Positions 32,233-57,699 of a DNA stretch of 64,000 nt are shown piece by piece. This stretch comes from Prasinococcaceae sp. CCMP 1430 (taxonomy: Eukaryota > Plantae > Prasinodermophyta): NCBI GenBank assembly GCA_013416795.1, contig RQSC01000014.1:112302-176301 (forward strand). The letters are read 5' to 3'. The position numbers and the translations under genes are program-made. Numbering within the stretch: position 1 is the first letter of the stretch; every line of letters begins with the position of its first letter. The notes under the pieces were generated by a model. The model worked only from the letters and a program-made list of their open reading frames with translations. It ran no database searches and was not told the origin of the DNA.

Positions 32233-34033
32233 CTACCGCACGCTTCGTTGCGCCTCGTAGACCTCAGCGAAGACCTCTCCGCGGTGCACAAAGTTGCGAA
32301 ACTGGTCGAAGCTCGCGCATGCCGGGCTGAGAATCAGTGCGCCGCCGTCGCGCGCCTCGGCGGCACCAGCGGCTGCGGCGGCCTCGAGTGCGGCACCCGC
32401 GCCTAGCTCGACGAGGCGACAGCGCGCTGCGCCCGCAAGGCCGGCCGCGCCGTCACCCGTCCCGAGGCCGGCCGCACGCAACTCCGCGGCGATTTTCGGC
32501 CCACTGGCCCCGAACGTGACCACACAGTCGTGTGGCTCGAGCGCCGGCACGAGGCGCGCCATGCCCAGCGCGCCAGCCGCGTCCTCCTTGGCCTCGCCTC
32601 CGAGCAGCACCACCGCGCGGCGACCGTCGAGACCCCCCACGCCAGCGATGGTCGACTCCACGTTGGTGGCCTTCGAGTCATTGATCCAAAGGACGCCGCG
32701 CGCATCCTCACCTAGCGCCTCCATGCGGTGTGGCGGTGGCAGTAGAGAGGCCATCGCGTCGGAGAGCGCGCCTGCGTCGCGCGCGACCTCGCTCGTGGCT
32801 GCCGCGAGCAGGCACGCTGCGGCGGCATTCGCGCGGTTGTGGCGCCCGACGGCACGCAATTTCGTGAGGTCGACCTCCAGGGACAGGTCGCTTTCACCGA
32901 CTGGCGGGCGACCTGCATGCGCGGGTAGTCGCACAAGCGCTCTCTCACCGGAGCGCGTCAGCCAGGCGCCAGCGGCGGTCACGAGCTCGCTGTCTTCGCA
33001 CACGCCCAGGAGGCAGGGCGACGCGCGCGGGGCTGCCTCGGCGGCCTTCTTGACGAGGGCCGGATCGTCCGCGGGAACGACAGCGACAGTACTGGCGTCA
33101 CGCATGTTGGCGAACACGGCCAATTTCGCCTCCGCGTACGCCTCCATCGTCCCATGTCGCGCGAGGTGATCGGGCGTCACGTTGAGGATGGCGGCAGCAT
33201 CCGGCGCAAACGCGCCGGCGAGCTGCAGCTGATAGCTGGACACCTCGACCACAGCCGCGGCGTAGAAGTCGCGGGCGATCTCTCCAGTGACGAACTGTGT
33301 TGCGAGGCACGACAAGGGCACGCCCAGGTTCCCGCCCACCCATGCGTTGGCGCCACATGCGTTGAGGAGCTGCCCCACAAATGTTGTCACAGTGGACTTG
33401 CCATTGGTTCCGGTGACGGCGACGAGAGACAGCTTCGGGGGGGGTGACAGGGCTTGGAGGCATTCCGAGGCGAAGGAGAGCTCGGAAGTTATCTTTGCAT
33501 GTGTGTCGATGTTGGCGTTGTGCGATGCGCGCGTGTGAGTTCGGCGCGCTTGCACTTGTCAGCGCGCTGCACGTGAGGCGGCAGCCTGGTTGGAGCGCTG
33601 GGTGCAAACGCGTTCAGCGCACCTCCACTCCTGCCGCATGCGCAGCGACTACCGCAGGGTGATCGGGGGGCACGCCGGGGCTGAGCACGGCAACGTCTGC
33701 CCCCAGGAGCGCATCGGCGAAGACGTCGGCGCCCACCGCGCTGCGGACGGCGGTGTTTTGCGTCAGCCTCCCAGGGAGCTCGAGCGGCGAGGATGTCGCG
33801 TTCTCGTCGACGCCGATGACTTCAATGGCGCCGCGAGCAGCAGCGAGCTCAGCGGCGGCGCGACCAGATGCGCCGAGGCCGACAACAGCGATGGTCTTGT
33901 CAGCAAGATCTGCCCGCTGTGTTGCGTGCGGGGTGTCCGCACAGGCTCGCGCCCGTCGCGACGAGGCGCGGGCTCGGGCCGGCGAGGGCGGCGCGGGCGG
34001 AGCGCGGCGAGCAGCAAGCTTGCACGCGGCCAC
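32233..34033 (-). CDS. murD: UDP-N-acetylmuramoyl-L-alanine:D-glutamate ligase MurD, putatively plastid-targeted; intron 33622-33493; no proximal ATG
   Basis: VVGLGASG, LSPGVP, P-loop VTGTNGKST, GGNLG, EVSSYQL, LNVTPDHL, HRME, INDSKATN, LSPACASFDQFRNF..RG..F; Arg/Ala/Ser/Pro-rich transit-like leader. Confidence 0.95.
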
Positions 34034-34064
34034 GCCGCGGCGTGGCCGCGTGCAAGCTTGCTGC
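34011..34064. repeat. Perfect 54-bp palindrome (inverted repeat, no spacer)
   Basis: GCAGCAAGCTTGCACGCGGCCACGCC-GC-GGCGTGGCCGCGTGCAAGCTTGCTGC reads identically on both strands. Confidence 0.97.
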
Positions 34065-34494
34065 GCTCGTGGGCGTGTTGCTTGCGGGGCTTGTGATGCT
34101 CTTCGCCGCCGCGGGCGAGATCGATGGCCACCACCTCAATCTGCCAACCACCCAGCAACTCATCGAGGACGCCAAGATCGCCATGGTCGAGATTGACAAC
34201 CTGGTGCACGCCGACCCCGCGGTGAAGGACACAGACTCGGACGGCCTCAACGACGCCGAGGAGGTAGCGCTGGGCACCTCGATTGTGCATGCCGACACAG
34301 ACTCCGATGGCCTCACCGACTTTGAGGAGGTCACGATCACGCAGACCGATCCGCTCAACCCGGACTCCGACGGAAACGGCACCCTCGATGGCGACCACCC
34401 GCAGGAGCGGGAGAAGGTCGCCAAGTACCGCTTGGAACAGATGACAATTGAGGCCGCCAAGCCCGGCGCGCGGCGACTGCACGCGCTGCAGTAA
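34042..34494 (+). CDS. Secreted/anchored protein with bacterial TSP3-type Ca-binding repeats (start GTG 34042 or ATG 34096)
   Basis: Hydrophobic leader LAALVGVLLAGLVMLFAAAG; repeats DTDSDGLNDAEE..GT, DTDSDGLTDFEE, TDPLNPDSDGNG..DG. Confidence 0.7.
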   Translation: MAACKLAALVGVLLAGLVMLFAAAGEIDGHHLNLPTTQQLIEDAKIAMVEIDNLVHADPAVKDTDSDGLNDAEEVALGTSIVHADTDSDGLTDFEEVTITQTDPLNPDSDGNGTLDGDHPQEREKVAKYRLEQMTIEAAKPGARRLHALQ

Positions 34495-40385: not shown

Positions 40386-42422
40386 TTACGCGCGGCCGGC
40401 TTCCCTGTCTATGGTCTTGAAGAGTCGGGGCACAGTGGTCATTGCCTGGAGCGTGCGCAGCACAGTGCTAACGGCGCTCACCACGATGAGCAGGCTGGTG
40501 AAGCCAGCGCTGATGCCAAGGGCTTGGAACTGCGCGTCGAGCAGGTCGCTGAAGCCAACCAGGAGTGCGAGCATCAGGCCGCCCACCACGTTTGCAGCCT
40601 GCTGGATCCTGTACAGGAAGGCCTCGGTGGCCTTGCCTGGGTTCACCATGCCAGCCTCAACACGCGCGAGCACAGCGAGCGGCGGTGTGGCGCGCACGCC
40701 GGCCCCTGCCTTGCTCAAATATTCGGCCGTCTGCTTGGCTTGCTTGCGACCGCTCAGCTGGTTGAGCGCGAACACCAGAAACATTGTGAGCACGATCTCC
40801 AGGGCGCGCGCCGCGCCACCACCGAGTCCCCCCGCCTCCCACAGTGGCCCAGCGAGCAGACGAAATATGACGATGGTAAATGAGGCGGCCACCACGGGCG
40901 ACAGCCCCGCCGCGCACACCTTGACGGGAACAAAGTTTGAGGAGCCACCGCCGAGCGTGTCTGTCGCCGCGCCCACTGCGCTGCCGCCCCCCGCCCCGCC
41001 CGCCCCGCCCGACGCTGGTCCACCTTCGGGCGGCGGCGGGGCCAACCCCATCGCACGCCCAGCTTCGGTGCCCACCAGGTATCGATCGAAGTCGATCTCT
41101 ATGCCAACTTCGCGCGAGAACCACACCACTGGCACTCTGAGCGTTCCCCCCTGCAGCAGCACCGCGAGCACGACGATGCCCACGAATGCACCCGCGTAGC
41201 TCGCCGCCACCGCCGCCGCGTTGCCACCCAGCGCACCGGCGGCGGCAGCCGCGGCCACCCTCGCAGCGGCCGAGCTCATCGTTGCCGCGAAGACAACCGC
41301 GATGGCCAGCGTCACGCCCTCCCCGAGGCCGTGCGTCGATTGCTGCTCGCACAGCCACGCGGTGAAGAGCGCGCCGGAAAGCAGAGCGACGAAAGCGTGC
41401 AGGCCCTGTGCGGGTGCTAGCCCAAACAGCGCGGTCGCAGCAGTGCCCGCCGCGGGTGCCCAGAAGCGTTGCGCGTCCGCTGCTCCCAGCGCCGCCATCG
41501 CCAAGCCAAAGTAGAGGGTCCAACGGCGCGTCATCCACGCCCGCATGCTCTGGCCGGCCTCACCCACCTCGTCGAAGGTCCGCTTGACCTCTGAGGGCCA
41601 GCCGTCGGCCGTCGCGTCCTGCGGGAAGAAGCTCGCCGTTGCATGGAAGGTGGTGAGAAAGATCGACGCCATGAGGCCTGCCGCGTAGCCCACGCCGAGC
41701 ACATTGAGGGCGAGCTTTTGCGTGATCGTGACCGTTCCGAAGCGAATTTCGCGGGCGCGATTAGGGGTGTGGTGGAGAGGGGGGGGGGGAGAGGCGTCAG
41801 AGCGCGCTCGCGGCGGTCGGGAGCGCGCGCGGGGCACGCAAGCCGCGCCTCGAGGCCAGTAAGCGCGGCTCACCTCGTAGCCCTTGTCGCCCGCAAGCGC
41901 GCTTGCCGCGGGTCCGCCGCCCGCCCCGCTGATGGCTGACAGCAGCGCGCCGGAGGACAGCCCCGCAAGGCCACCAGGAAAGGACGCTCCGGACGCGGTG
42001 GACGCCGCGTTCGCCGCCGCGGCAGCAGCCTCGGGAGGCACGGCTGCAGCCGCCCTTAGGTACACGCCGGCATCGCCGGTGAGCGGCGTGAAGAGCCCTG
42101 CGCGCACGACCACGATGAAGAGCAGCGAGAACGCGGCGCGGCGTGCGAGTTCGGATCTCGAGAGAGAGCGCAGCGGCGCGATGAGTGCTGCGAATGGCGC
42201 CCACGAGCCCTTTGTCCCCCCCGCGGGGGATGCGACGCCAACCGCGCCAAGCCCTGCGCGCCCCGCGGTGCGCTCTGGCGCGGCGGGCGGCAGGCCCGCG
42301 CGANGCTCGACCTGTGCGTCGTTCTGTCGCCTCCGAATCCACCGCCGAGCCCTCCCCCCGCCCGCACCCGCGGCACGCGCGCCCGCCGCCAGCACCGGAC
42401 GCTCACGCTCGCGCGCGAACAT
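40386..42422 (-). CDS. SCY2: Plastid preprotein translocase SecY2 (SCY2)-like; probable intron 41873-41715; start uncertain
   Basis: RRAAFSLLFIVVVRAG.F.PL.G, AWLCEQ.S..GLG.G, VPVKV.AAG..PVV, AEYL.K.GA, PGKATEAFL.RIQ, GG..LALL, GFTSLLIVV. Confidence 0.8.
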   Translation of the reverse strand: MFARERERPVLAAGARAAGAGGGRARRWIRRRQNDAQVEXRAGLPPAAPERTAGRAGLGAVGVASPAGGTKGSWAPFAALIAPLRSLSRSELARRAAFSLLFIVVVRAGLFTPLTGDAGVYLRAAAAVPPEAAAAAANAASTASGASFPGGLAGLSSGALLSAISGAGGGPAASALAGDKGYEVSRAYWPRGAACVPRARSRPPRARSDASPPPPLHHTPNRAREIRFGTVTITQKLALNVLGVGYAAGLMASIFLTTFHATASFFPQDATADGWPSEVKRTFDEVGEAGQSMRAWMTRRWTLYFGLAMAALGAADAQRFWAPAAGTAATALFGLAPAQGLHAFVALLSGALFTAWLCEQQSTHGLGEGVTLAIAVVFAATMSSAAARVAAAAAAGALGGNAAAVAASYAGAFVGIVVLAVLLQGGTLRVPVVWFSREVGIEIDFDRYLVGTEAGRAMGLAPPPPEGGPASGGAGGAGGGSAVGAATDTLGGGSSNFVPVKVCAAGLSPVVAASFTIVIFRLLAGPLWEAGGLGGGAARALEIVLTMFLVFALNQLSGRKQAKQTAEYLSKAGAGVRATPPLAVLARVEAGMVNPGKATEAFLYRIQQAANVVGGLMLALLVGFSDLLDAQFQALGISAGFTSLLIVVSAVSTVLRTLQAMTTVPRLFKTIDREAGRA

Positions 42423-42427
42423 TACAT

Positions 42428-42457
42428 TAAACCCTAATAAAATGTAAACCCTAATAA
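42428..42457. promoter_or_regulatory. Tandem telo-box-like motifs (TAAACCCTAATAA x2) in the SCY2/NLR divergent spacer
   Basis: 13-nt direct repeat at 42428-42440 and 42445-42457, each containing AAACCCTAA, in an AT-rich island. Confidence 0.55.
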
Positions 42458-42685
42458 TTTTGGGGGCGCGAACCGCGAGGCGTCGCGAGGGGAGCTTCCG
42501 GGCGAGCGCGTGTTCTTTTTCCGGCGCACAGGTGGATGGTCCCACACCACACGAGGTTGCCGCTGCTGGCGTGAGCGAGAGAGGGGAGGGGTGGAGGGGT
42601 GGCGCTGGGGCGAGAAAGAGGGTGCCGGTGGCACTCCGTGCGCGCTCCCCGCGTCGCCCGGGGAGCGGAGTGGCGGGGGCGCGAG

Positions 42686-45600
42686 ATGAGCGCCCCGGCG
42701 GGGGGCAGCGGCGCGGGCGGCCCCTCCGCTCCACCGCGGCGCGCGCTTCGCGTCGGGCAGTGCGCCAAGGACGAGGCCAAGTGGTGGGCAAAGCTAAAAG
42801 AAACGCTCGGGGACGCAGCCTTTGCAGCGCTGGAGTGGGCGCCGACGGCGCTTGAAGTCACCGGCATCGTGTTCGAAGCGACAGGGCTTGCGCTTGATGT
42901 TGCGGACGGCACCGTGCCCTTCGTGAGCATCGCTAATGCGTTGGTCACGCGGGTGCGCGACAAGGTAGACGAGCTGAGGCAGGTGGACGAGCTCGCAGCC
43001 GCAAAAGCGGGCCGACGCGTGCGTGTGTGGTGCTCAGTGATCCACAAGATGCCTGCGATGGTCTACCAGGCAGAGGACGCCACATTTGTTGCGACCATCG
43101 ACGCTCTGATTGAGCTGGCGCGGCTCGCAGTGAAGTGGAACTCGAAAGCATATTACAAAAAGCTTTACTGGGGGACGGCCTCGAAGTACCGCAGCGATCT
43201 AAACAAGGCCATTCTGGAGCTCGACGTGCAGTATGGCGCGCTGCTGGGCGAGGCGGTGATCATCGCGCTTGAAAAGATCGACAACGTGCTTGCAAGCAGT
43301 ATCGCGTGCATTCACAATCTGCCCAATGGCCTGCCCGAGCTGCTGGGCCGCGAGGACACTCTGGAGGTGCTCGAGACGGCCTTGGCGTCGCCTGGCTCCG
43401 TGACGTCACTCACGGGCATCGCCGGCGTGGGCAAGTCGCAGCTGGCGTTCCGCTGCGCGTACGACTTTGTTTTCACGGACGATGGCACGCCCAGGGAGGA
43501 CCGTCGCCTCGCGTGGTTCTTGGATGCCTCTAGCGAAGCAAAATTGGTGGCGAGCTACGCTGGCGCGCTGGTGGCGCTCACAAACGAGTCCATTGAAAAG
43601 GCCGACAAGGACCCCGTCTCCGGGGACAAGCTGTCGCCGCGGGATCTGGCGGACAAGCTGCTCGCTGAGATCACGCGCAGCGGACGCAGCAGCCTGCTCG
43701 TGTTTGACAACGTCAAGGAGGATGAGAAAGATGGCGGGGCACAGTGGCTTCGCCAGCGGTACTTCTCATCACTTGCCGGTGCGGCGAATGCGCATGTGCT
43801 CATCACGTCGCGCAGCGGCACGCTCAGGGGCGACGTGGAGGGCATCGGCCGCATCCACCAGGTGGTGGTAAAAACGCTGAGCCCGGAAGCTGGCGTCGCC
43901 CTGCTTCTCGGTGACGACGACGCGAGTGAGGATGACCACGCAGCAGCGCGCAAGATCCATGAGCAGCTGGAGGGCCTCGCACTGCCGCTCAGCGTCACGC
44001 GAAAGTTCGTGAGTGACAAGCGTGTCATTGAAAAGGGGCGTTTCACGCTGCAAGGCGTCGCCAAGGGCCTCGAAGAGGCGGCCGACAAAGTCGAAGCGGC
44101 GCTCGCGGCGCCGCTGCGCTTCGTGAGGGATGGCTACAAGCGCTCAGCCAAGGTGCTGGACGTTGCGGCGTTTGTCGATCCGAGGGGCATCCCTGAGGGG
44201 CTGCTGTTACGGGCCGACGCCAGCTGCAAGGATGAGGACATCGACCTGCTGTGCGACCTGAACCTGCTGCAGCTAGGCGCTCCGATCACGGTCGGGATGT
44301 CGGGACAGACGGAGCCAAGCTACTCGATGCACCACCTGCTGCAGGCCGCCGCCCGCAAAGAGGTCGGCGAGGAGGGCGCCGCGCGTAGACCACGCAGCGC
44401 TGAGGGTGCGCTGGCCGCCGTGTCTGGCGAGATGACATCGTACAAGGAGTCGGACCTGTCGACGTGGGCGCGCGCGCGAGCTGCGGTGCCGCATGCCGAG
44501 GCGCTGCACGCGGCGGCGAAGGAGGGCGGCATCGCAGACAAGGTCGAGCTCGCCCAGGTGATTGGAGCCGCAGGCACCATATGCGCCCGCACCCTCGGCG
44601 ACTTCGTCAGGGCCCTGGAAGCGTTCAAAAAGGCGCTACGCATCACGCGCGCCGCGCTGGGCAACGACCATCCGGATGTGGCGGTGACGCGCAATAACAT
44701 GGGCGCGGTGTACCAAAGGCAGGGGCGCTACGTCGAGGCGCTCGAAGCGTACGAAGAGTCGCTGCGCATCGAGCGCGCCGCGTTTGGCGACGACCACCCG
44801 GATGTGGCGGCGACGCTCAACAACATTGGCAACGTGTACCAAAGGCAGGGGCGCTACGTCGAGGCGCTCAAGGCGTACGAGGAGGCGCTGCCCATAATGC
44901 GCGCCGCGCTAGGCGACGACCACCCGGATGTGGCGACGACGCTCAACAACATGGGCATCGTGTACCAAAGCCGGGGCCGCTACGCCGAGGCGCTCAAGGC
45001 GTACGACGAGTCGCTGCGCATCAGGCGCGCCGCGCTGGGCGACGACCACCCGGATGTGGCGGCGACGCTCAATAACATGGGCGCGGTGTACCAAAGGCAG
45101 GGGCGCTACGTCGAGGCGCTCGAAGCGTACGAGGAGGCGCTGCGCATCAGGCGCGCCGCGCTGGGCGACGACCATCCGGATGTGGCGGCGACGCTCAATA
45201 ACATTGGCAACGTGTACGCAAGCCAGGGGCGCTACGCCGAGGCACTCGAAGCGTTCAAAAAGGCGCTGCCCATATTGCGCGTCGCGCTGGGCAACGACCA
45301 CCCGACTGTGGCGATGACGCTCAATAACATGGGCGCGGTGTACCGAAGCCAAGGGCGCTACGCCGAGGCGCTCGAAGCGTACGACGAGTCGCTGCGCATC
45401 AAGCGCGCCGCGCTGGGCGACGACCATCCGGATGTGGCGGCGACGCTCAATAACATGGGCCTGGTGTACCAAGGCCAAGGGCGCTACGCCGAGGCGCTCG
45501 AAGCGTACGACGAGTCGCTGCGCATCAAGCGCGCCGCGCTGGGCGACGACCATCCGGATGTGGCGGCGACGCTCAATTACATGGGCGCGGTGTACCGAGA

Positions 45601-46219
45601 CCAGGGGCGCTACGCCGAGGCGCTCGAAGCGTTAAAAAAGGCGCTGCCAATATGGCGCGCCGCGCTTGGCGACGACCATCCGGATGTGGCGGCGACGCTC
45701 AACAACATGGGCGCGATGTACCAAAGCCAGGGGCGCTACGCAGAGGCGCTCGAGGCGTGCGAGGAGTCGCTGCGCATCACGCGCGCCGCGCGGGGCGACA
45801 ACCACCAGAATGTGGCGATGGCGTATGGGAACATGGGCAACACTTTTGCAAACCAGGGACGCTCCGCAGACGCGCTCGAAGCCTATCGGAAGGCGCACCG
45901 TATTTTTCGTGCCGTCTTCGACGAGGATCACCCCCTCGTCGCCAAGACGCGTGGCAAGATCGAGGCCATGGAAGAGCTGCCAAAGCTTGCCAGCGAAGAG
46001 CAGCAGCAGAGCGCCGCGGCTGCTCCATCCACCAGCGGCTCGGGCACGGCAGCTGGGCGCTCGGAGGAAAGGCAACGCGCGGTGGAGGCTCTCTCGATCC
46101 GCGAGTTGAAGGCTGAGCTCAATGCGTTGCAAGCGATGCCACGCGGCGCGCTGGAGCGCGGCGACCTCGAGGAGGAGCTGCGGGCGGCGCGAGCGCGCGG
46201 TGGCGCACAGCAGCAGTGA
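42686..46219 (+). CDS. NLR-like STAND protein: putative MLKL-like N-terminal helical domain + NB-ARC + ~11 x 42-aa TPR units + short HeH/SAP-like tail
   Basis: Walker A GIAGVGKS, Walker B LLVFDNV, sensor VLITSR, GLPL-like EGLALPLSV, MHD-like YSMHHLLQ; kinesin-light-chain-type TPRs (LGDDHPDVAATLNNMG.VY..QGRY.EAL); single exon. Confidence 0.93.
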   Translation: MSAPAGGSGAGGPSAPPRRALRVGQCAKDEAKWWAKLKETLGDAAFAALEWAPTALEVTGIVFEATGLALDVADGTVPFVSIANALVTRVRDKVDELRQVDELAAAKAGRRVRVWCSVIHKMPAMVYQAEDATFVATIDALIELARLAVKWNSKAYYKKLYWGTASKYRSDLNKAILELDVQYGALLGEAVIIALEKIDNVLASSIACIHNLPNGLPELLGREDTLEVLETALASPGSVTSLTGIAGVGKSQLAFRCAYDFVFTDDGTPREDRRLAWFLDASSEAKLVASYAGALVALTNESIEKADKDPVSGDKLSPRDLADKLLAEITRSGRSSLLVFDNVKEDEKDGGAQWLRQRYFSSLAGAANAHVLITSRSGTLRGDVEGIGRIHQVVVKTLSPEAGVALLLGDDDASEDDHAAARKIHEQLEGLALPLSVTRKFVSDKRVIEKGRFTLQGVAKGLEEAADKVEAALAAPLRFVRDGYKRSAKVLDVAAFVDPRGIPEGLLLRADASCKDEDIDLLCDLNLLQLGAPITVGMSGQTEPSYSMHHLLQAAARKEVGEEGAARRPRSAEGALAAVSGEMTSYKESDLSTWARARAAVPHAEALHAAAKEGGIADKVELAQVIGAAGTICARTLGDFVRALEAFKKALRITRAALGNDHPDVAVTRNNMGAVYQRQGRYVEALEAYEESLRIERAAFGDDHPDVAATLNNIGNVYQRQGRYVEALKAYEEALPIMRAALGDDHPDVATTLNNMGIVYQSRGRYAEALKAYDESLRIRRAALGDDHPDVAATLNNMGAVYQRQGRYVEALEAYEEALRIRRAALGDDHPDVAATLNNIGNVYASQGRYAEALEAFKKALPILRVALGNDHPTVAMTLNNMGAVYRSQGRYAEALEAYDESLRIKRAALGDDHPDVAATLNNMGLVYQGQGRYAEALEAYDESLRIKRAALGDDHPDVAATLNYMGAVYRDQGRYAEALEALKKALPIWRAALGDDHPDVAATLNNMGAMYQSQGRYAEALEACEESLRITRAARGDNHQNVAMAYGNMGNTFANQGRSADALEAYRKAHRIFRAVFDEDHPLVAKTRGKIEAMEELPKLASEEQQQSAAAAPSTSGSGTAAGRSEERQRAVEALSIRELKAELNALQAMPRGALERGDLEEELRAARARGGAQQQ
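44597..45976 (+). repeat. Coding tandem repeat, 126-bp unit, ~11 copies
   Basis: Unit starts at 44597, 44723, 44849, 44975, 45101, 45227, 45353, 45479, 45605, 45731, 45857. Confidence 0.97.
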
Positions 46220-53728: not shown

Positions 53729-54132
53729 CGCCGCACCCCGCGCGCCGCCGCCGAGCCTCGCGGCAGCGCGCACCGCTGGACGGTCAGGGTCAGGGTCAGG
53801 AGAAGCGGCGGGAGGCCCGAGCGCCCCGACCCACGGCGCGCGCGACGGCTGAAGCAGTATCTCGACCACAGAGAGTGAGGAACGTCATGTCGAACAGCGC
53901 AACGTCTGACTCAGCGCCGAGCTCTGCGAGCAGCACAGAGCTGGCGCCCTCGGACGACGACCTGGGGGAAAATGGCAGCGAAAGAGACGCGTGCCGCGCG
54001 CACTCGCGTACGAGCAGCCTGAGCAGTGCGGCGTGCACCGAGTGTCCCATTTGCTCGGAACCCTTGCGCATCGCGCAGGCAATGCCTCCTCTCAGAGGCA
54101 ACGACGGCCGTGGAGGCGACGGCCAGCGTGNG

Positions 54133-56250
54133 AGCGCCAGCGCGCTGGCGGCGCCACGCGCGCCGCGCCGCGCGTCGTGTGCGCACTGCCACTCGGCGTC
54201 GCGGCAGCCGCTGGCGTGGACGCGCTCGCGCAGCTTGCCGCCGCATGCGAGGCACATGCGCAAGGCCCTAACGTGGGGGGCATGGTGGCCGAGCGCGACG
54301 CAGGCGCGCCCGCCTCCGCCCCAGCGCTCGCGCTGGACGCCGCCACCGTGAGCAGCGCGCGCCTCCGTGCGCGCTTCACGCTGCTTTCGCCCGACCCGAC
54401 GGATGTGCTCGCGGTGCTGGACGCAGCGTCGGTGGCAGACGTGGTGCTGCTCGTGGTGGACGCGCCGGGCGCCAGTGAACTCTCGCACAAGACGGGCGCC
54501 GCTGCCGCAGAGAATGTGTGCGTGGTGAGCGAGGCCGTGCGCCCAGCGCTGCGCGCGCTCTGTGCACAGGGCGTGCCCGCGCTCGCCGTCGCGCTGCGCG
54601 GACTTGCGGCACTGCCGCCCACGCAGCGCAACACGAGCAAAAAGGCGGCGCTGGCGGCACTCGCGCGGGACGCAGTCCTTGGCGAACCCGACAAGGCTTT
54701 CCCCGCCGACACGGCAGCCGACTGGCAGCTCGCCGCGCGCGCACTCTCCGAGCTGCGTCCTCGGCCGCCCGCGTGGCGCTGCGGAGGACGCGCGTACGTG
54801 CTCGCGCACAGGGTGGGCTTCGAGGCCGGCGCCACGGCGGTGGCGGAGGGCGCTGACGCGCCGCCGGCGGACGCGGCGGTGGGCACGCTCGTGTTGGAGG
54901 GGTACGTGCGCGGTGCCGACATGCACGCCGGGCAGCTCGTGCACGTGCAGGGTGCCGGCGACTTTGCAGTCACGAGCGTGGATGCCGCCGACGAGCCGGA
55001 GGGAGCGGCAGGGGCGGCGCAGCGCAAGTCGGGGGGCGACGTCGCCATGGGCGGCGGTGCGGGCGCGGGGGGTGGCACCTGCGGGGGCGATAGGGTGTTG
55101 AGCGTCCCGTCCTCATCGAACCGCCACCTGCTGATGGTGGAGAATGAGTACGATGAGTTGCAGAACGAGCAGACGTGGCCGACGGCGGAGGAGCTTGAGG
55201 CCGCCGACCGCGAAGCCGCGGCGCGATCGCAGGGGCGGCGGCGAGTGCCCAAGGGCACGAGCTCGTACCAGGCGCCTTGGCTACTGTACGAGGAGGGAGA
55301 CGAGGAGGGCGGCGCCGACGGCATGGACGACCATATGGGCGGGATGGAGGAGGATGGTGTTGAGTCTGAGCCGGAGGAGCTCGTGTCTGAGCCCGAGGAC
55401 GACGGGGTGGGCGCGGGCGGCGGCGGAGACGCCGACGGCATGGTCACCGATGGCGAGCTGCGGGAGTCGGCGGAGCGTGTCGCGGCCGCGCACGCTGCGC
55501 GTGCCGCCGAGCTCGCCGAGCGGCGTGCGTTGGCCGAGGCAGGTGAGGCGGAGTACCCCGACGAGGTGGACGCTCCGCTCGACCGCCCGGCGCGCCACCG
55601 CTTTCAGAAGTACCGCGGCCTCAGATCCATGCGCACTGGCGAGTGGGACCCGAAGGAGATGCTTCCGCTCGAGTACGGGCGCATCTTTTCGTTCCGCTCT
55701 TTCGCGCAGGCCCGCGCGCGCGCACAGAAGGAGGCCGCAGCGCTCATCGATGGCGAGCCCTCGGCGGCGGAGCAGCAGGAGGACGGCGACAGCATGACTG
55801 ATGGTGCCGCGGCTGGCGCACACGTGTCTCCCGGCACGTTCGTGCGCATCCGCGTGGCCAACGTGCCCGCTTCGGCCGCACAGGCGCTCGTGGAGGCCGT
55901 TTGCGGCGGCGCAGAGGGCGTGGCAGCCGTGCAGGCGGGCGCGCTGGCGCCAGCGCGCGAGTGCCTCGTATGCGTGGCACTGCTCAACCACGAGACAAAA
56001 GTGAGCGTCGCGCACTTCCGTGTGACCAAGGCGCGCGGCTGCTCTTACCCCCTGGCGTCCAAGCAGGTGCTCTACGTGCGCTGCGGCTTCCGTCGCTTCG
56101 TGACGCGCCCCATCTTCAGCGACGACGGGCTGCGTTCAGACAAGCACCGCTACCTGCGTTTTCTCCCGCAGCACGGCACGGCTGTGGCCACGTGCTACAT
56201 GCCTATCTCCTTCCCCTCAATGCCCGTGCTGGCGTTCGCGCCGCGCGACG
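54133..56250 (+). CDS. TSR1: Pre-rRNA processing factor TSR1 (N-terminus lost at single N 54132; C-terminal ~100 aa absent)
   Basis: APRVV.ALPL, AARP2CN-like GYVRG......LVHVQG.GDF, NEQTWPT.EEL, VPKGTSSYQA.W, YPDEVDAP....AR.RFQKYRGLRS.RT..WDPKE.LP..Y.RIF, LLNHETK.SV, GFRRF.TRPIFS, K.RY.RF. Confidence 0.88.
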
Positions 56251-57240
56251 CGGCCGCCGAGGCAAAGCTCGCCAAGAAGTGCGAGCTCTACCGCGCGCTC
56301 TCGAGGAAGGTGCTCAGCGCGGCTGCGGCAGGCGCGCGGTCGGAGGCGGCGTGGGCGGCCGCGGGCTCGCTCGCCGAGCTCAATCCGGACTGCTACACGG
56401 CGTGGGCGCTGCGCAAGCGCTGCCACCTCGCGCTCGTGCACGCCAACTCCGACGCCGAGCGCACGCTCGTCGCCGATGAGAAGAGGCTCACCGAAGCCGC
56501 GCTGCGGCGCAACCCCAAGGCATACTCCGCATGGCTGCACCGCCGCTGGCTTTCCGCACGCACGCTGGCCGCCGGCGATGCTGCGCGCGAGCTGCTGCTC
56601 TGCAATGCCATGCTTGACGCCGACGAGCGCAACTTCCACTGCTGGGGCTACAGACGCTTCGTGGTGTCGCTCGCGTCGGGGGAGGTGGGTGGAGGCCCGG
56701 GCGCGACAGACAGCGGCGAGCCCACCGCTGCGAGCGAGCTCGCGTACGCTCGCCGGCGCATCGCGGCAAATTTCTCGAACTACTCGGCGTGGCACGCGCG
56801 GTCGGCCAACCTCACGGAGCTCGAAGCCAGCACTGCGGGAGGCGGGGGCGAGGACAACGCGGTGGACGTCGACGCCGAATTCGAGCTCGTGAAGGGCGCG
56901 TTCTTCACAGATCCGGAGGACCAGAGCGCATTTTTTTACTATCGCTGGCTCATAGGGCGCACCCTGCGTGCCGCAGCTGTGGGCGCGAGCGGCACGTCGG
57001 CGGGCATCGCCGCGGAGGTGCTCGAGCGTGAGGTGGCGTCGATTCGCGAGCTACTCGAGATGGAGCCCGACTCGAAGTGGGCGTCGCTCACGCTCGCTCG
57101 GCTGCAGGCCGCGCGCGCGGCGCTCCCCGGCTGCGACGAGCGCGAGGCGCAAGCCATGAAGGCCGAGACCGCGCGCTTGCTGGACGGGCTCGCGCGAAGC
57201 GACCCCATGCGCGCAGGCTACTACGCTTCCTCCGCGGAGG
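56251..57240 (+). CDS. RGTA: Rab geranylgeranyltransferase alpha subunit (PPTA repeats), in frame with TSR1 and lacking its own N-terminus
   Basis: LNPDCYTAWALRK, ALRRNPKAYSAWLHRRW, LDADERNFHCWGYRRFVV, NFSNYSAWHARS, AFFTDPEDQSAFFYYRWL, ELLEMEPDSKW, DPMRAGYY. Confidence 0.88.
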
Positions 57241-57620
57241 CGCCGTGGGAGAGCCAGGCCGCGGCGCTTTGCGGGGACAGCACGAGCGCCGGGGCGCAGC
57301 GGGGTCGAGGCTCGAACAGCACCGTCGCAACCAAAGGCGTCAATGGCGCCGTGCCGAGCTTCGAGCAGCGCGAGGCTGTTCGCCGCAGGCTTGCAGCCAA
57401 CATCGAGGCCATGGTGTTCTTCTCGCCGGCGGGCGGCGCCGCTGGCGGGGACGGCGCGCCCGCGCCGGGCGCTGACAACAACAACGCGTACCGCGACGCC
57501 TCCAACGCCGACGTGGAAGCCGAGGCGCGCGACATCGAGGCGATGGCCGCCCTCGGCGCCGCGTCCTCCGGCGGTGGCTACACCGCCGCGATCGCCGCCG
57601 ACGCCGCACGCGCCGTCGCG

Positions 57621-57681
57621 NNNNNNNNNNNNNNNNNNNNNNNNNNNNNNNNNNNNNNNNNNNNNNNNNNNNNNNNNNNNN
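57621..57681. other. Assembly gap
   Basis: N run. Confidence 0.99.
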
Positions 57682-57699
57682 GCGGCTGAGACTGGGGCG

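Follow-up and report, generated by a model that had tools for sequence, protein, structure and literature searches.

Among the closest described systems, the tetratricopeptide (TPR), ankyrin (ANK) and WD repeats of fungal nucleotide-binding oligomerisation domain (NOD)-like receptors (NLRs) combine high internal repeat conservation with repeat-number polymorphism and positive selection on the concave face (Dyrka et al. 2014, PMC4986451). NLR-like proteins with high internal conservation (HIC) occur across all domains of life, and TPR repeats are exchanged between genes (Ament-Velasquez et al. 2026, PMC13449251). The brown alga Ectocarpus encodes 24 NB-ARC-TPR genes whose 126-nt, 42-aa TPR exons are under diversifying selection (Zambounis et al. 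2012, PMC3341825). NB-TPR genes of green algae are also on record (PMC7145615), and the genome paper of the green alga Prasinoderma coloniale (69.8% GC) makes no mention of them (PMC7455551). Here we analyse a 64,000-nt stretch of contig RQSC01000014.1 from Prasinococcaceae sp. CCMP 1430 (the window), which encodes an NLR-like protein of 1177 aa ending in an array of 126-bp TPR units. We read this array as the TPR superhelix with which an NLR-like STAND protein would sense its ligand, and in which a homogenised scaffold carries diversified groove positions, and give this reading a probability of about two in three. It is carried by the architecture of the gene, the homogenisation of its repeats, an excess of amino-acid change at particular sites and the match of those sites to canonical concave positions.

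Comparison with described NB-ARC-TPR and TPR systems

The predicted protein is probably a HIC NLR-type sensor of a design already described in fungal and brown-algal receptors. With fungal HIC NLRs such as the NB-ARC-TPR proteins of Podospora it shares the order of head, NB-ARC-like NOD and 42-residue TPRs of the kinesin light chain (KLC) type, repeats homogenised at the DNA level with a few concave positions under apparent positive selection, and, here among relatives, a varying unit number and shuffled N-terminal domains. It differs from them in its picoplanktonic algal host, in a lower internal identity (85% nt and 62–90% aa, vs. 80–100%), and in having a weak period of three units as well as an additional, conserved tail at the C-terminus. 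The fungal repeat-sensor precedent invoked in a first-pass annotation of the window agrees with the published description (PMC4986451).

The Ectocarpus family resembles the window gene as an algal family with the same 126-nt, 42-aa unit and signs of diversifying selection in its TPRs, and its high gene turnover can be likened to that of the window family (PMC3341825). There, however, each repeat occupies one exon and shuffling is exon-based, whereas the array described here is one continuous open reading frame (ORF); the two lineages, stramenopile and green, are unrelated. The bacterial family NF040586 (FxSxx-COOH system TPR protein) matches as a profile over both NOD and TPR, although the window gene is eukaryotic and has another head and tail. 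No FxSxx peptide-system context was found around the gene, whose neighbours are eukaryotic (importin-11, Prp31, Tsr1, SecY, GT64). The KLC TPR domain (PDB 7AI4, 3NF1, 6FUZ), which binds cargo peptides in its concave groove, shares the 42-residue TPR_12 repeat and the superhelix; in contrast to the window protein, it has six diverged repeats, a coiled-coil N-terminus, no NOD and no DNA-level homogenisation.

The repeat array and its homogenisation

Tandem Repeats Finder (TRF) reported, at 44611–45817, a period of 126 bp (9.6 copies, 85% matches) and a period of 378 bp (3.1 copies, 89% matches). Cutting at 44597 yields eleven in-frame 42-codon units, numbered such that codon k of unit n begins at 44597+126(n-1)+3(k-1). 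The first-pass annotation had described about 11 nearly identical units. This description fits units 2–9, which are 79–95% identical at the nucleotide level and about 62–90% at the amino-acid level in the core, but not units 1, 10 and 11, whose nucleotide identity to the core decays to 76–83%, 66–79% and 52–59%, respectively. Its codon readings were exact, including the residues T, E, M, R, R, L, K, K, W, T, F at codon 17, the lists for codons 30, 37 and 40–41, the CCC/CCA ATA of units 3, 6 and 9, the ATT GGC AAC of units 2 and 5, and the first 33 codons of units 7 and 8, which are identical.

Word searches recovered only three relatives, all of them Tara Oceans proteins, encoded on scaffolds of 68% GC with eukaryotic genes, whose NOD and TPR are 57–60% identical to those of the window protein and whose TPR unit number is roughly 6–9, compared with 11 here. 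Codon 1 is GGG in 8/10 window units and in 0/33 units of the relatives, and codon 8 is GAA in the window units and mostly GAG in the relatives. Units within the array are 85–89% alike, while their likeness to related arrays is 76–82% whatever the register, and no identical unit is common to the window array and the related arrays. These array-specific synonymous states show homogenisation within the array and point to its having taken place after divergence from the relatives. Internal repeat conservation at the DNA level is high, although close to the lower limit of what fungal arrays show (synonymous diversity, piS, 0.145).

The 378-bp higher-order repeat proposed in the first-pass annotation survives in part: TRF detects it in the window and also in three related arrays, but it is weak and amounts to a faint trace. 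Averaged by hand over the pairwise matrix, units three apart (lag 3) have an identity of 0.877, compared with 0.861 for neighbours (lag 1) and 0.851 at lag 2. A unit type with Pro-15 ('ALPI') recurs at lag 3, in window units 3, 6 and 9 and in units 4 and 7 of a related TPR-only gene. Along the array the unit types run roughly (x, IGN, P) (D, IGN, KP) (D, D, KP), an order that fits an older 3-unit block in which the sequence of unit 7 has since replaced that of unit 8. As judged from these comparisons, the 3-unit period is real but minor. The mosaic of units 7 and 8 could stem from a conversion tract, or else from a recent duplication after which codons 34, 37, 40 and 41 changed. For the unequal crossover invoked in the first-pass annotation, the only traces would be this mosaic and the differing unit numbers of the relatives.

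Such patterns might instead reflect a static TPR scaffold, in which fairly recent tandem amplification, including that of a 3-unit block, was followed by divergence of the groove to suit a single, unchanging asymmetric partner (kinesin light chain and nephrocystin-3 are examples), with no arms race or ongoing shuffling. Some of the unit order is indeed old, since the Pro-15 type and the 378-bp period are common to a relative at only 77–82% identity. The array-specific synonymous states, which indicate homogenisation after divergence, the unit 7/8 mosaic, and the differences in unit number and head domain among close relatives all speak against a static array, and we consider this explanation rather unlikely.

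Near-identical 126-bp units are also difficult for short reads, and the unit number or order could in principle result from the mis-collapse or chimeric joining of a repeat region that is in truth longer or otherwise composed. A second copy of the locus was not retrieved by exact protein look-up or in a scan of JGI metagenomes, as such an artefact would allow. However, the frame is intact across all 11 units and the tail, every unit is distinct, and three Tara scaffolds that were assembled independently show the same architecture. For P. coloniale, the published assembly was built with PacBio reads (PMC7455551), which is relevant only if it is the source. An assembly artefact is accordingly the least probable of the explanations considered, and extremely unlikely.

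Excess of amino-acid change at five codons

Nei-Gojobori pairwise diversity was calculated for units 2–9, with the per-codon table summed by hand. Overall, piS is 0.145 and nonsynonymous diversity (piN) is 0.127, a ratio of 0.88. Codons 17, 30, 37, 40 and 41 reach a piN of 0.478, or 3.3x piS, and hold 46% of the nonsynonymous diversity in 12% of the codons; at the remaining codons, nonsynonymous diversity is 0.54x piS. A minimal-change count by hand gave 18 nonsynonymous changes per 11.7 N-sites for the five codons, compared with 12 synonymous changes per 30.4 S-sites for the whole unit, a ratio of 3.9 (binomial p ~2e-4, hand calculation). The elevated per-codon dN/dS anticipated by the first-pass annotation was thus recovered at the five codons, at about 3-fold over synonymous by these approximate counts. 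A nonsynonymous excess of this size is a further point against a scaffold fitted to one fixed partner.

The site class was defined on 33 units of five related arrays from Tara Oceans scaffolds, where no codons vary more than these five (9–13 different residues each), so its choice is not circular. In an alignment of 43 units, conservation drops below 70% mainly at the first and second positions of codons 17, 20, 30, 32, 37, 40 and 41, and only 6/42 third positions are that variable. Variability is therefore codon-specific rather than randomly distributed, as the same codons vary in the relatives while third positions are mostly conserved.

Codon 20 shows a two-base dimorphism in the Tara arrays, where it alternates between GCG (Ala) and AAG (Lys) in roughly half of the units; the window units all encode Ala.

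Four of the five variable positions map to the concave groove

The array matches the TPR_12 (E 6.7e-194) and TPR_10 (E 1.7e-144) profiles, and among solved structures it is closest to TPR domains of kinesin light chain (E 6e-53) and to 4Y6C, a protein of 42-residue repeats from Podospora. An AlphaFold2 (AF2) model of the array has a mean predicted local distance difference test (pLDDT) score of 89.3 and consists of regular A/B helices, with helix B at unit positions 3–21 and helix A at 26–41. Foldseek aligns this model with cargo-bound KLC1 TPR domains at a TM score of 0.81–0.82.

Position 1 of the Pfam TPR_1 and TPR_2 profiles aligned to unit position 29. The signature residues L32, M/I35, G36, Y39, A6, Y/F10 and A/S13, which correspond to canonical positions 4, 7, 8, 11, 20, 24 and 27, agree with this register, and unit positions 30, 33, 34, 37, 40 and 41 are therefore canonical 2, 5, 6, 9, 12 and 13. 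TPR positions 2, 5, 9, 12, 13, 33 and 34 were placed on the concave face by Magliery and Regan, and HOP holds its ligands via positions 2, 5, 6, 9, 12 and 13 (PMC1261162). By profile register, variable codons 30, 37, 40 and 41 (canonical 2, 9, 12 and 13) thus lie on the concave face, where the first-pass annotation had expected them. The register supports their placement as one stripe on the groove-lining helix A, flanking the conserved asparagines 33 and 34.

Helical-wheel reasoning places codon 17 on helix B, mid-face toward the A helices and one turn before the B–A loop. Because W, E, K, L, T and M are all tolerated there, it is not a core position, and we infer that it lies at the groove rim beside position 30.

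Gene architecture and the nucleotide-binding domain

Features of the gene are listed in Table 1. Its GC content at third codon positions (GC3; 42686–46219) is 0.81, comparable to that of adjacent coding ORFs, and exact look-up returned neither an exact protein nor an exact gene model on record for the 1177-aa ORF. This layout supports the assignment of the locus to the C-terminal repeat domain of a predicted NLR-like STAND protein.

Table 1 Features of the NLR-like gene in the window (positions count from the first letter of the window).
Feature	Position	Strand	Basis or remark
Whole ORF, 1177 aa + stop	42686–46219	+	No interruption; ATG at 42686, stop ends at 46219; head, NOD, TPR array, tail
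N-terminal head, ~217 aa	42686–43336	+	Predicted all-helical; no family assigned
NB-ARC-like STAND NTPase (NOD)	43337–44437	+	NCBIfam NF040586, NOD part E 2e-23; motifs
First A-type helix, ahead of unit 1	44540–44596	+	AF2 model helix 35–53
TPR_10/TPR_12 array, 11 units of 126 bp / 42 aa	44597–45982	+	TRF, profiles, unit cutting, AF2
Homogenised core, units 2–9, with hypervariable codons 17, 30, 37, 40, 41	44723–45730	+	
Units 7 and 8, mosaic pair	45353–45604	+	First 99 nt identical, last 27 nt with 6 differences
C-terminal tail, ~78 residues, with conserved ~40-aa motif	45983–46216	+	Common to TPR-only gene of related scaffold

Within the NOD, a Walker A motif (GIAGVGKS) was read from the sequence near 43415–43438 and a Walker B motif (LLVFDNV) near 43691–43714. 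A GLPL-like motif (GLALPLSV, near 43973–43996) and an MHD-like motif (MHH within SMHHLL, near 44327–44335) were likewise assigned by reading, not by structure. The core residues of all four motifs are invariant in 4/4 relatives. The best profile match is the bacterial NB-ARC-TPR family NF040586 of NCBIfam, both for the whole protein (335 bits, cutoff 300) and for the NOD alone (E 2e-23), and a sequence search of structures found no solved STAND structure matching the NOD. Further Pfam matches are TPR_NPHP3, a weak NPHP3_N and TPR_MalT; the two nephrocystin-type matches would sit well with a fixed-partner scaffold.

The bacterial profile and the TPR_MalT matches raise the alternative of a non-immune STAND regulator, whose NOD-TPR would sense an endogenous metabolite or protein and control signalling or transcription, like the bacterial MalT/AfsR-type and FxSxx-associated NB-ARC-TPR proteins. 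Such a role would also suit a head in which no recognised death or effector domain was found by Pfam, AF2 or the language-model atlas. Sensors of endogenous ligands are not expected to combine homogenised repeats, hypervariable contacts, swapped heads and a variable unit number, a combination that is enriched in NLR-type receptors (PMC13449251), and a non-immune regulator therefore appears quite unlikely.

Head, tail and related TPR-only genes

The N-terminal head had no notable match in Pfam or NCBIfam and none in PADLOC. Its AF2 model was unusable (pLDDT 39). The language-model atlas offered SesA (0.83) and MLKL_N (0.77) as leads, both under the trust level of 0.9, and an MLKL/HeLo reading of the head is not supported, given these scores and the lack of a family match. 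Despite 57–60% identity over NOD and TPR, the head shows no detectable similarity to those of its closest relatives (BLASTP E 4.2 with L001:10001–10600, on a Tara scaffold). Judged from this comparison, heads have been swapped in this family, as is common among NLRs.

On that related scaffold (L001:10001–16622), the NLR-like gene is followed by two tandem TPR-only genes (481 and 466 aa) made of the same 126-bp units. The window tail, taken as the last degenerate TPR plus the ~40-aa motif, is 59% identical over 116 aa to the TPR-only gene at L001:16140–16619, and tails appear to pass from one of these gene types to the other. No Pfam family was found for the tail in a scan to E 5, and a SAP-like reading of it was rejected on the same result. 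The NLR genes of the Tara scaffolds terminate earlier than the window NLR. A second related scaffold, L002, carries a similar NLR followed by TPR-only genes.

Because the TPR-only genes consist of the same 126-bp units, stand in tandem behind an NLR gene on the related scaffold and, in one case, have the tail in common with the window gene, they could be donor cassettes from which gene conversion rewrites the NLR sensor in 3-unit blocks. This would amount to templated receptor diversification in a unicellular green-lineage alga, a speculative extension that we hold to be very improbable. No TPR-only gene adjoins the NLR within the 64-kb window. Positional orthology with the related TPR-only gene was considered and rejected, since several registers align at 76–82% and none is preferred.

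A model for the sensor and the points against it

In the model that we favour, a ligand-sensing superhelix on an NLR-like STAND protein, rounds of duplication and gene conversion, some of them in blocks of three units, would keep the 42-residue scaffold near uniform. Five positions per unit would be kept different between units, four of them (30, 37, 40 and 41) in the groove stripe and one (17) on the inward face of helix B at the groove rim. Together, the variable residues would spell a long, unit-by-unit binding surface, whose specificity could change through point substitution and as units are gained, lost or put in a new order. If the protein works like other NLRs, a bound ligand would free the NB-ARC-like switch and turn on the N-terminal head. 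The inferred parts of this model are that the array senses a ligand, how the switch works, that the output is immunity or cell death, and that turnover is still going on.

A number of points weigh against this model. Variable concave positions are a general property of TPRs (PMC1261162), which is equally what a scaffold serving one fixed partner would display, and the location of the gene among housekeeping genes (SecY, GT64 and an aminotransferase) also favours such a scaffold. The excess of amino-acid change comes from pairwise or hand parsimony counts, not recombination-aware codon models. Moreover, the strong GC3 bias (0.81) constrains synonymous sites and inflates the ratio; a two-fold correction would leave omega near 1.7–2, and the actual excess may be closer to two-fold. 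Codon 17 is placed by helical wheel rather than by coordinates. The NOD scores 22.4 bits with Pfam NB-ARC, slightly under the cutoff of 23.5, and no recognised effector fold was found for the head in Pfam, NCBIfam or PADLOC. Neither alleles nor a second copy, by which unit turnover might be followed, turned up in the exact protein look-up or the JGI metagenome scan. Finally, no experiment is known that connects an NB-ARC-TPR protein with immunity in any alga.

Provided that the organism is correctly attributed, putative NB-ARC-TPR receptors encoded without introns occur in an early-branching lineage of green plants. Should the model be true, these sensors would evolve by the logic of fungal HIC NLRs and brown-algal NB-ARC-TPR proteins, and the design would extend to picoplankton. 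The locus would then offer a compact, sequence-defined system for asking if NLR-type recognition, of viruses for instance, operates in unicellular marine algae. Strain typing and binding studies have definite targets in the five variable codons of each unit.

Genomic neighbourhood

The window is eukaryotic, gene-dense and of 68% GC, and encodes importin-11, Prp31, Tsr1, DHHC, TMF, SecY and GT64 proteins. The GC value is compatible with the 69.8% published for P. coloniale (PMC7455551). A SecY-type translocon gene (40386–42791, − strand) and the NLR-like gene are arranged head-to-head. The long SecY ORF runs into the start region of the NLR, so the upstream region common to the two genes must be short. 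A stop-free segment of high GC3 at 33820–34491 (+ strand) stands out in the otherwise eukaryotic window by its match (E 1e-8) to thrombospondin type-3 repeats of the bacterial kind (TSP3_bac). At 53910–57686 (+ strand), one stop-free frame encodes Tsr1-type AARP2CN and RIBIOP_C domains followed by prenyltransferase alpha-subunit repeats, and represents either a fusion or two neighbouring genes that share a frame.

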